A DNA stretch of 64,000 bases from Paraphysomonas bandaiensis (lineage: Eukaryota > Protista > Chrysophyceae). Shown piece after piece: positions 15,632-18,163 of this stretch. The position numbers were made by a program, and so were the translations under genes. The notes below the pieces were generated by a model. The model was not told where the DNA came from. It ran no database searches and saw nothing but the letters and a program-made list of their open reading frames with translations. The stretch spans positions 1-64,000 of the forward strand of contig CBFFRP010000111.1 of the NCBI GenBank assembly GCA_965644295.1, in the 5' to 3' direction. Within the stretch, counting starts at the first letter, position 1; every line of letters begins with the position of its first letter.

Positions 15632-18163
15632 ATGGGTGGTTCCATGGTAACACCTACATCTGATGGCCCTACCTCCATCTTACAGCGTTGTAGGGAAATC
15701 TTCACCTCCCTAGAATATCTATCCCGCTTGGAGCCAGATATCCGTAAGCTACGACGTTTGCAGTTCATAGATGAGAATAAAGGAGCCTTCCTCGTGAATG
15801 TTCTACAATCACATGAGAGCTCTTTGGCGGAAAGAATAGCTGCAGCTGCTGCAATATCTGCGATGGGCTTTGGAGTAACAGATGAGAAGCGTCTCAACCG
15901 CTTATATAACCAGCAATGTGTTGTAGCCCTAAATCATAACTTCTCCTCCACAAACTCTATGGAGCTAAGGACATGGTGTATCATAGCAATATGTGATCTC
16001 AATGCCAATGCATCATATGGCCTTCAGCATACATGGGATTGCGGAGCGGTGCATAATGCGTTTACATGGTTGGCAATGTATGTGTCCACAAAAGACCTTG
16101 CGATCAAAGAACATGTCATAAAAAAGCTTCCTATAAAGAACTTTACAGAAACCCCCTGCTATGAAATACCTCTTGTTAATGTTGCCTCAGAAGACTTGAC
16201 GGCTCCCACACAGCATGCCGTATCTTCAGAAATATTACAAGAGAGCAACCTCCATCCAGAGACGCAGCTTATGGCGAAGTCCATGTCTCCCGGGCCGCAT
16301 CGCATCGCTATGTACATCCTAGGTCTCTTCGTAATGTTCTCTAGGAATCAGGACTTCATGCCGTTGCTGCATAGCATCAGTTTAGAGTCATGTGATGCGT
16401 ACAAATCCTATCGTGTATGGCTGATGAAGCATTATGGTGACTGCACTGCAGATGCTGTCATTACAAACAATATTACTAGTGAGCCTGCGCATAGATCTGA
16501 GGATGATGTGGTGGGTGGGGACTGGTATCGCCCTAGGCTCCTGAAGCACATATTATTTACTCCTTCGTGCTGTCCTACAGATATTGTGTTACATGTGGTG
16601 GAGAGTAACGATGAAATGTATGCGCATATTGCAGCATCGGTCACAGCCTATATGATCGGAGCAGATGAGACGGGTCACATATCTGCCGATGCTGCAGATG
16701 GCATCACTGTAATGGACATGGAGAAGGGCGCTACGGACCAACCTTGTGAAGTGCGTAGGGCTAGACAAACTGTCCATGCTGGGATCCCTAGTGCGGTTAT
16801 ACAAATGCTTTTGGATGCTGCATGTGCGGGCGTAAATAATGAATTGTACAAAGGTTTCTCGGCGTATCTGAAAGTGTGGACATACATGCAGCCCCTTTCT
16901 GTCATAGCCATAGCGGATGTGAACAAGAGTCGTATCTGTAGTCTAGGAGGCATTGCAGTTGCGGTGAAAGCGCTATCTCATCCAGACGATAAGACCAAGC
17001 AAGTCACAACACAGCTACTTTGGTTGTTGGCTTTTCATGATAGAGCAAAGGAGCTGATCATGGCAGATGGTAGGGCGCTTCCACTACTGAGAGAGATCGC
17101 CCATTCCTCAGAGGTTAGTTCTGCTACACGCACTAATGCTCTGGGAACTCTATGGCAATTGAATGCGGCCAAGCAAGCTCATGGGATAACGGAAGATGTA
17201 AACACGAAAATATATGGAGATGATGAAGAGAAGGATGGTGTACAGCATATAATGTTGAGCTATCAATGGGATGACCAAGCACTAGTGGTGATGGTGAGGA
17301 AGTATCTCGAAGAGAGTGGTTATAAAGTATGGATGGATGTGGAGAAGATGGAGGGAAGCGTGCTGGAGTGCATGGCAGATGCAGTTGAAGGAGCGCAGTG
17401 GATCATCATGTTTGTCAGCTCACGCTACAGAGCGAGTGCTTGTTGCAGATCCGAAGCAGAATATGCGTACAAGTTACGCAAACCTATAATTCCTGTGATG
17501 ACACAAGAAAACTATAGCCCCGAGGGTTGGTTGGGGATTCTATTAGGAACGAAATTATATTATAGCTTACACGGCGTCGCGCAATGCACTAAGACTATTT
17601 ACACAAATTGTAAGCTGCCTGAGTCTGTCTATGATCTGAAGGCTTATAGTCATCACGAGGAAGTCACACAGTTTGAGATGAAAATGGGATCAATAATCAA
17701 ACAAATTTCAGGCCCCGCTGTTGCTGGTAAGAAGAATATAACACAACATAATGGAAATGGTGTGGAGCAAGTAGCAGCTATTTCACACAATGGCAGAAAA
17801 GAACCACACACGGACAGTTCAAACCATACAGGACAAAAAAGCAATTCAACTCATAATCATAATGGTGATAATAGTGTAATTTTCGACTTTCAGGACGAAG
17901 AATATATGAATAATCTGTCTAAGTTAAGTACTGCGGAGATACAAGAGTGGGTACTAAATGTTACAAAAAATATTGCTACCTCGAAAGAATTTATGAAACA
18001 AGATATTGACGGGAATGCTTTACTGGAGTTAAGGAGCATTTTGTTGAGCGATGAGAATCTGTTCCATTCCATGTTGAAAGATGACTTACACATAAAATCT
18101 TTAGGAACTAGATTGAGTATATCACGAGCTCTTAGACATCTTAGTGGCATTCTACAAAAGTAG
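15632..18163 (+). CDS. ARM-repeat + TIR (TIR_2-type) + SAM domain protein, 843 aa, intronless
   Basis: ARM: NKSRICSLGGIAVAVKAL...LLWLLAF...NALGTLWQL. TIR: HIMLSYQWDD...GYKVWMDVEKM.GS.LE.MADAVEGA...SSRYRASACCRSEAEYA...KPIIPV...GWLGILLG. SAM: STAEIQEWV...FMKQDIDGNALLEL...LGTRLSISRAL. Confidence 0.9.
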   Translation: MGGSMVTPTSDGPTSILQRCREIFTSLEYLSRLEPDIRKLRRLQFIDENKGAFLVNVLQSHESSLAERIAAAAAISAMGFGVTDEKRLNRLYNQQCVVALNHNFSSTNSMELRTWCIIAICDLNANASYGLQHTWDCGAVHNAFTWLAMYVSTKDLAIKEHVIKKLPIKNFTETPCYEIPLVNVASEDLTAPTQHAVSSEILQESNLHPETQLMAKSMSPGPHRIAMYILGLFVMFSRNQDFMPLLHSISLESCDAYKSYRVWLMKHYGDCTADAVITNNITSEPAHRSEDDVVGGDWYRPRLLKHILFTPSCCPTDIVLHVVESNDEMYAHIAASVTAYMIGADETGHISADAADGITVMDMEKGATDQPCEVRRARQTVHAGIPSAVIQMLLDAACAGVNNELYKGFSAYLKVWTYMQPLSVIAIADVNKSRICSLGGIAVAVKALSHPDDKTKQVTTQLLWLLAFHDRAKELIMADGRALPLLREIAHSSEVSSATRTNALGTLWQLNAAKQAHGITEDVNTKIYGDDEEKDGVQHIMLSYQWDDQALVVMVRKYLEESGYKVWMDVEKMEGSVLECMADAVEGAQWIIMFVSSRYRASACCRSEAEYAYKLRKPIIPVMTQENYSPEGWLGILLGTKLYYSLHGVAQCTKTIYTNCKLPESVYDLKAYSHHEEVTQFEMKMGSIIKQISGPAVAGKKNITQHNGNGVEQVAAISHNGRKEPHTDSSNHTGQKSNSTHNHNGDNSVIFDFQDEEYMNNLSKLSTAEIQEWVLNVTKNIATSKEFMKQDIDGNALLELRSILLSDENLFHSMLKDDLHIKSLGTRLSISRALRHLSGILQK

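Follow-up and report, generated by a model that had tools for sequence, protein, structure and literature searches.

A stramenopile member of the ARM-TIR-SAM protein family with an extended armadillo domain in Paraphysomonas bandaiensis

SARM1 is an NAD+ hydrolase in which tandem SAM domains build an octamer and the armadillo (ARM) domain is autoinhibitory. In the human protein the catalytic glutamate is E642, located in helix alpha-C of the TIR domain, and catalytic TIRs require both this alpha-C glutamate and self-association, by which they form composite active sites. For plant TIRs, 2',3'-cyclic nucleotide monophosphate (2',3'-cNMP) synthetase activity has also been reported. A classification of TIR-domain-containing proteins that are evolutionarily conserved (ecTIR-DC) was reportedly set out by Gerdol and co-workers in 2017. 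Such proteins, among which ARM-TIR is counted, are said to occur widely in invertebrates and to have hypothetical functions (PMC6321704), and 'ARM-TIR' genes are listed as putative adaptors in invertebrate immunome papers, for example 11 in Aplysia (PMC9334734). We analyzed a gene from the chrysophyte Paraphysomonas bandaiensis that encodes ARM, TIR and SAM domains and that lies within a stretch of 64,000 nucleotides (the window: contig CBFFRP010000111.1 of assembly GCA_965644295.1, positions 1 to 64,000). An earlier note on this DNA had described an intronless 843-residue protein with SARM1-type parts in a different order, had mentioned that ARM-TIR proteins are described in invertebrates, as the literature just cited bears out, and had proposed an NADase and immune executioner. 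We found that the protein, which comes from a stramenopile and has an extended ARM domain, is a new addition to a known ARM-TIR-SAM family whose function is uncharacterised.

The gene is predicted to be a complete single-exon coding sequence of 843 amino acids plus stop at 15632..18163 on the + strand, with an ATG start and no internal stop in the list of open reading frames (ORFs), so the single uninterrupted frame of the earlier note stands. From N- to C-terminus the protein has an ARM solenoid, a TIR domain, a low-complexity linker and one SAM domain. The ARM-TIR-SAM order, the intact alpha-C glutamate and the different arrangement of SARM1-type parts were thus read correctly. This arrangement is not peculiar to the protist; it is the standard one in a very large family of marine-animal and green-algal proteins.

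The TIR domain, of the TIR_2 type, covers residues ~539-660 (17246..17611, + strand) and was recognised by Pfam, by a profile of the family, by the structural model and by Foldseek. Pfam TIR_2 matched residues 540-647 with an E value of 1.2e-18 (a score of 68 bits, where the cut-off is 28), confirming a domain that had been placed at ~17243-17570. In the model, residues 539-660 have the beta-alpha pattern of a TIR, and the family TIR profile matched the TIRs of Cat1, TIR-1, SARM1, RPS4 and Roq1. The motif CCRSEAEYA begins at residue 604, which makes its first glutamate E608, encoded by the GAA codon at 17453..17455 (+ strand). Sequence, alignments and model agree on this residue as the candidate catalytic glutamate in helix alpha-C. 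It lies within a model helix (603-614) directly after a strand (590-595), its position is occupied by glutamate in 114 of 116 aligned relatives, and it is invariant in an alignment of 39 TIR sequences (A3). Profile-to-sequence alignments paired it with the glutamate of HKEL in Caenorhabditis elegans TIR-1 (PDB 8p2m) and with that of WCWDEL in Cat1, so that the earlier placement of Glu608 at the catalytic position was upheld. Conservation of at least 90% was also seen at about 30 other TIR positions, although overall identity among the relatives is just 30-50%, which argues for a constrained site and not merely a conserved fold. The family-invariant TIR residues, each of them at least 90% conserved in a 118-sequence alignment, are all present in the Paraphysomonas protein (H539, S543, Y544, W546, W567, D569, M581, Y599, S602, C605, R606, E608, P621 and G632-W-L-G635).

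Upstream of the TIR, residues ~11-516 (15662..17179, + strand) form an ARM solenoid of roughly ten repeats with several loop insertions, as judged from an AlphaFold model, VIA-align and Foldseek. The model was built from a 118-row alignment (A2) and had a mean predicted local distance difference test (pLDDT) score of 81 and a predicted template modelling (pTM) score of 0.68; a run on the single sequence reached a pLDDT of only 33. Residues 16-516 were all-helical, mostly with high pLDDT. In VIA-align, the stretch 11-512 of the model gave Z scores of 22-24.5 with designed ARM proteins, Vac8, p120 catenin, plakophilin and beta-catenin, well over the background quoted for helical repeats. Foldseek put full-length C. 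elegans TIR-1 (8p2m) and human SARM1 (7anw) at the top, with beta-catenin and designed ARM proteins next. The ARM region itself is closest to generic ARM proteins. The ARM repeats that had been placed at ~16920-17160 therefore stand as to fold, on the model, VIA-align and Foldseek, whereas the Pfam Arm match at residues ~431-467 was just under threshold (19.6 against 20.6 bits). The earlier note had also set apart an unrecognised N-terminal helical region of about 400 residues as a possible separate sensor. This did not hold up: the language-model neighbours of residues 1-380 are mostly ARM and HEAT families, and because of these neighbours and the VIA-align scores we read the region as further armadillo repeats, the front half of one long solenoid. 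The last ~130 ARM residues (385-516) are common to the whole ARM-TIR family. For residues 1-380, relatives were found in four proteins only (P0001, P0002, P0013 and P0157), all from environmental or run-level assemblies.

The C-terminus is a real but divergent SAM domain of six helices, at residues ~756-842 (17897..18157, + strand), identified by a homologue profile and by the model. By itself it was below threshold in Pfam (SAM_1 E 0.024; 15.4 against 23 bits). A profile of 21 homologous C-termini (A1), the consensus of which is the classic SAM signature, matched the SAMs of liprin-beta (2e-14), SHANK2 (1.3e-11) and SARM1 SAM1 (3.6e-11), as well as that of polyhomeotic and about 100 other solved SAM sequences in all, and 14 of the 21 members individually passed Pfam SAM_2 at E<=0.01. 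Because of these matches we consider the SAM call to be correct, and the SAM that had been proposed at ~17910-18145 is retained with slightly different limits. The first Trp of the SAM has been lost, and an insertion of ~11 residues relative to canonical SAMs forms an extra helix; pLDDT over residues 761-830 was mostly 86-95, with one block at 75. A search of the host genome with the SAM profile found this SAM variant in the described gene only. Between TIR and SAM lies a low-complexity linker rich in N, S, G and H (residues ~693-755; 17708..17896, + strand), defined by its composition. Its residues ~699-752, with pLDDT of 32-36, are predicted to be disordered, and the orthologue P0001 has a linker at the same place that is even longer.

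The gene model looks complete at its 5' end because the N-terminus aligns with the N-termini of the orthologues P0001, P0002 and P0013, all of which have their own start codons. The frame upstream of the ATG at 15632 is open for four codons only and then meets a stop. The N-terminal extension, residues 1-380, is known in orthologues, either full-length or split, from four independent assemblies. Judged from the sequence, the gene is real and under constraint. There was no transmembrane segment in the 843-residue protein (the maximum 19-residue hydropathy was 1.48) and no obvious signal peptide. We rejected a transmembrane or secreted form on this hydropathy value, and N-terminal myristoylation, considered for the MG start, on the grounds that position 6 is Val and that the orthologues lack an MG start. 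The protein is probably cytosolic. The DNA upstream of the start codon, at 15300-15620, is rich in TA/CA dinucleotide runs (tatatacatatacacatacac, atatatatatatgtatgtat), and spurious antisense ORFs arise from this sequence at 15233-15604 and 15535-15897 on the minus strand.

An exhaustive HMMER search over 1.84 billion representative sequences gave 4305 matches, 223 of them at E<=1e-30. Most of these span residues ~390 to ~650 of the Paraphysomonas protein, that is, the last ARM repeats and the TIR, and the homologue alignments are continuous from residue ~385 to ~650, with ARM directly N-terminal of TIR. Among 209 homologues that were fetched, 168 had a SAM profile match and 156 had the SAM C-terminal of the TIR. 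Named members occur in cnidarians (Nematostella, Acropora, Oculina, Hydra), hemichordates (Ptychodera, Saccoglossus, Glandiceps) and echinoderms (Amphiura, Strongylocentrotus, Lytechinus, Anneissia), and there are members in molluscs, annelids and tunicates and in green algae (Pedinophyceae, Haematococcus, Tetrabaena). The nearest structural clusters in the ESM Atlas combine Arm, TIR_2 and SAM_2, with Chlorophyta the commonest source, followed by a mollusc cluster; 84-93% of the members of these neighbour clusters have SAM_2. The best relative is only 39-44% identical to the Paraphysomonas protein, a distance at which synonymous sites are saturated. Its TIR is 48% identical over 110 residues to A0A0B7AZE4 of Arion vulgaris (P0194), the representative of a cluster in the survey of Hurieva et al. 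2026, in which TIRs were clustered at >=40% identity (bioRxiv 10.64898/2026.04.20.719644). The protein is thus a member of the eukaryotic ARM-TIR-SAM family, TIR cluster A0A0B7AZE4 (Hurieva et al. 2026, Table S2).

The closest described proteins are the invertebrate ARM-TIR proteins and their green-algal counterparts. The former (Nematostella LOC5512767, Acropora, Ptychodera, Saccoglossus, Amphiura, oysters, Aplysia, and Phallusia A0A6F9DHT8) share with the Paraphysomonas protein a unit made up of the last ~130 ARM residues, the TIR and the SAM, with E values from 1e-30 to 1e-84, and the same invariant TIR motifs, glutamate included. The Paraphysomonas protein differs from them in having ~380 extra N-terminal ARM residues, seen only in a few environmental orthologues, in its more divergent SAM without the first Trp, and in its host, a stramenopile and not an animal. 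Some of the animal members have two ARM-TIR units. The same three-module order is found in the green algae Haematococcus lacustris (KAL6761002.1, an 'armadillo-type protein'), Tetrabaena socialis (PNH02769.1), Pedinophyceae sp. YPF-701 (CAG9460273.1 and CAG9461007.1) and Chlamydomonas reinhardtii (A0A2K3E7X5). These proteins are the nearest named branch; their ARM domains are shorter, and full-length pairwise identity to the Paraphysomonas protein is 26-37%.

SARM1 and TIR-1 have the same three domain classes, an aligned catalytic glutamate and the top Foldseek ranks. In contrast to the ARM-TIR-linker-single SAM arrangement described here, they have the order ARM-SAM-SAM-TIR, with tandem SAMs and an octamer. 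The TIR profile matched bacterial Cat1 (2.9e-10) better than it did SARM1 or TIR-1 (~1e-5). The SAMs of liprin and SHANK scored better than that of SARM1 with the family SAM profile, although SARM1 SAM1 was among the best matches, and the ARM domain is longer than that of SARM1 and more like those of generic ARM proteins. On these relative scores we rejected a special relationship to SARM1. The protein is not a SARM1 orthologue or a member of the SARM1 family, and the parts that the two share are best read, from the sequence comparisons, as independent domain shuffling. Cat1 (PDB 9mud) was the best solved-structure match to the TIR in sequence (E 0.0015 with the single sequence, glutamate aligned), and there were weak PADLOC matches to the SAVED-TIR and Argonaute-TIR models of bacterial TIR_2 NADases. 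Cat1 differs in being bacterial and in its partner domains: it has no ARM or SAM, and its filament is driven by a cyclic oligoadenylate sensor.

The closest orthologues come from environmental sequences. P0001, a protein of 1002 residues from a Joint Genome Institute (JGI) metagenome, has the full architecture including the SAM, and P0011 matched in the TIR and SAM parts only. P0002 corresponds to the N-terminal ARM part and is followed 27 nt further on, on the same strand, by a TIR-SAM protein, P0086; P0013 is likewise followed, after ~340 nt, by a TIR_2 gene. At both of these loci (L019:4465-8552 and L020:376-3279), the orthologue was called as two adjacent genes on the same strand, the ARM part and then the TIR-SAM part. 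Because two members of the clade were called in two pieces, we suggest that an intron or a break in the frame separates ARM from TIR in them, which is not so in the Paraphysomonas copy. When a tree was built from the ARM-TIR region by maximum likelihood, the Paraphysomonas protein grouped with P0001, P0086 and P0011 (SH-like approximate likelihood ratio test, SH-aLRT, 96), and the sister of this clade was a group that includes the green-algal sequences (SH-aLRT 82). Among the four environmental sequences with which the protein was grouped in all, three have the long N-terminus themselves or lie beside it. All named animal sequences were elsewhere, which argues against a recent transfer from an animal. 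The tree is unrooted and of modest support, and is compatible with ancient inheritance as well as with algal transfer. As far as the sequences indicate, the doubled ARM domain is a shared property of this small clade. A scan with the TIR alignment found no relative on viral contigs (113 pattern matches, none related), and thus gave no sign of a viral origin.

ARM-TIR-SAM proteins are among the larger TIR families of marine animals, with several or many copies each in echinoderms, hemichordates, corals and molluscs. They are also present in green algae, and we found no characterised function for them in the literature. The occurrence in a stramenopile, beside the green-algal branch and outside the named animal clades, suggests that the family is older or more mobile than the label 'invertebrate immune adaptor' implies. 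The Paraphysomonas gene adds a single-celled organism in which the family could be studied.

With regard to function, we favor a gated NADase similar to SARM1, a reading that is plausible but unproven and that we consider about evenly balanced. In such a protein the SAM would gather several copies, and the TIRs would pair into composite active sites that cleave NAD+, yielding as a signal either ADP-ribose (ADPR) or an isomer of cyclic ADPR (cADPR), or depleting NAD+. As in SARM1, the ARM solenoid would restrain the TIR until it is bound by a ligand or a partner protein, and the whole would serve as a switch for stress, infection or cell death. The N-terminal ARM extension peculiar to the clade would offer more surface for binding and so may set specificity. 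In the survey of Hurieva et al., the alpha-C glutamate was essential in every catalytic TIR tested and is retained by most non-TLR eukaryotic TIRs, and TIRs of a choanoflagellate, an amoebozoan, a cryptophyte and an oomycete made cADPR in a glutamate-dependent manner (bioRxiv 10.64898/2026.04.20.719644). TIRs from neighbouring clusters were active in the same work, those of Magallana gigas, Clupea and Adineta making cADPR and that of Latimeria depleting NAD+ (Table S4). As read from the printed sequences, these active TIRs have HxMxSY...C-x-x-E...WLG-type motifs like those of the family.

Several points weigh against a gated NADase. Where a W-C-x-x-E motif usually has its aromatic residue, the family has N and the Paraphysomonas protein has C. 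Both ARM autoinhibition and SAM oligomerisation are proposed here by analogy with SARM1, and our literature search found no phenotype for any member of the ARM-TIR-SAM family. Finally, four isolated TIRs of the same cluster, from C. reinhardtii, Branchiostoma lanceolatum, Lepisosteus oculatus and Phallusia mammillata (P0112 in our search), were expressed in E. coli, with no mark of activity for any of the four, whether in cADPR isomers, in NAD+ depletion or in ThsE activation (bioRxiv 10.64898/2026.04.20.719644, Table S4). In that assay 25 of 154 TIRs were active, and plant TIRs including RUN1, RPS4 and RPP1 were blank too (bioRxiv 10.64898/2026.04.20.719644). Because so few TIRs were active and these plant positive controls were blank, we regard the negative results with isolated TIRs as weak evidence. 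They are nevertheless the only experimental data that we found on this TIR cluster, and the earlier designation as an 'NADase/immune executioner', a deduction, was overstated.

The same four negative results would fit a non-enzymatic adaptor or scaffold, in which TIR, SAM and ARM act as interaction modules, similar to MyD88, and the glutamate is kept for an interaction surface or for stability. We consider this somewhat unlikely. ARM and SAM are classic interaction modules, and ARM-TIR proteins are treated as putative adaptors in the invertebrate papers (PMC9334734). However, most scaffold-type animal TIRs, those of the TLR and IL-1R clades, lack the glutamate in the survey (bioRxiv 10.64898/2026.04.20.719644), whereas this family has kept it in nearly all aligned relatives across animals, green algae and stramenopiles, and the assay that favors an adaptor is subject to the low overall rate of activity and the blank plant TIRs described above. 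A TLR or MyD88 partner is not known in this stramenopile, although no search aimed at one was made.

A second alternative, that the TIR is catalytic with another substrate or output, would account for a glutamate that is conserved in a cluster whose TIRs were nonetheless negative for three cADPR isomers and for NAD+ depletion. The output might be that of a nucleic acid-directed 2',3'-cNMP synthetase, as for plant TIRs, or a nucleotide signal outside the assay, and N or C in place of the aromatic residue before the glutamate could alter substrate binding. The closest active relatives, however, make canonical cADPR or deplete NAD+, and we find this alternative improbable. It is very improbable that the sequence does not represent a functioning gene of the host, being instead a copy that is silent or in decay, part of a contaminant contig or newly acquired from an animal: the exact protein is absent from a collection of 15 billion sequences and its best relative is distant, but the 843-codon frame has no stop and all family-invariant residues intact, the flanks are ordinary eukaryotic genes (bromodomain-PHD, GT41/TPR with oomycete relatives, a Copia element), the assembly has an ARM-TIR paralogue on a different contig, the protein belongs to the 96%-supported clade of environmental orthologues beside the green algae and not to an animal clade, and no relative was on viral contigs.

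A broader and more speculative extension of the gated NADase, which we think unlikely as a whole, is that ARM-TIR-SAM proteins are an ancient, pre-animal, self-contained death or alarm switch. This switch would be SARM1-like but independently assembled, with SAM polymerisation turning on a Glu608 NADase and with ARM as a sensor of a ligand or effector, roughly doubled in the stramenopile clade for, for example, a virus or a metabolic signal. If this were true, the protist would be a tractable model for the whole animal and algal family.

We searched the host genome (a 62.6-Mb assembly of 669 contigs) for related genes. There was one ARM-TIR paralogue, on contig 280 (L002:7-2214; about 31344-33551, + strand), encoding 735 residues with a helical, ARM-like N-terminal half. 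Its TIR_2 domain (E 2.7e-19) is 44% identical to the TIR described here, and there was no SAM match in its C-terminal tail or beside it. As called, the N-terminus of this paralogue starts with an MYVC repeat, so that translation probably begins further in. The genome has at least 14 TIR_2 loci (L004-L017), in open frames of 123 to 1129 residues, and 11 of these exceed the Pfam cut-off. This protist has a large TIR repertoire of diverse architectures. A further protein, of 251 residues and with TIR_2 as its only domain (E 4.5e-15), is encoded on contig C25 (L003:1156-1911) and has three tandem 11-residue units, NAPNQSSTP(Y/S)Y, ahead of the TIR.

The earlier note had put introns in most of the neighbouring genes; the window holds, besides the gene described here, seven uninterrupted ORFs longer than 500 codons. 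A 666-residue protein with a bromodomain and a PHD finger is encoded by a single ORF at 31817-33817 (+ strand), and an apparently intact Copia-type polyprotein of 1468 residues, with RVT_2 and retroviral SH3-like domains, lies at 45429-49835 (+ strand). On the minus strand, at 20931-22556, there is an ORF of 541 residues with TPR and a partial GT41 (O-GlcNAc-transferase-like) domain. The gene model there is probably multi-exon, because relatives cover only 30-40% of the ORF; its best named relatives are in the oomycetes Phytophthora and Aphanomyces, consistent with a stramenopile host.

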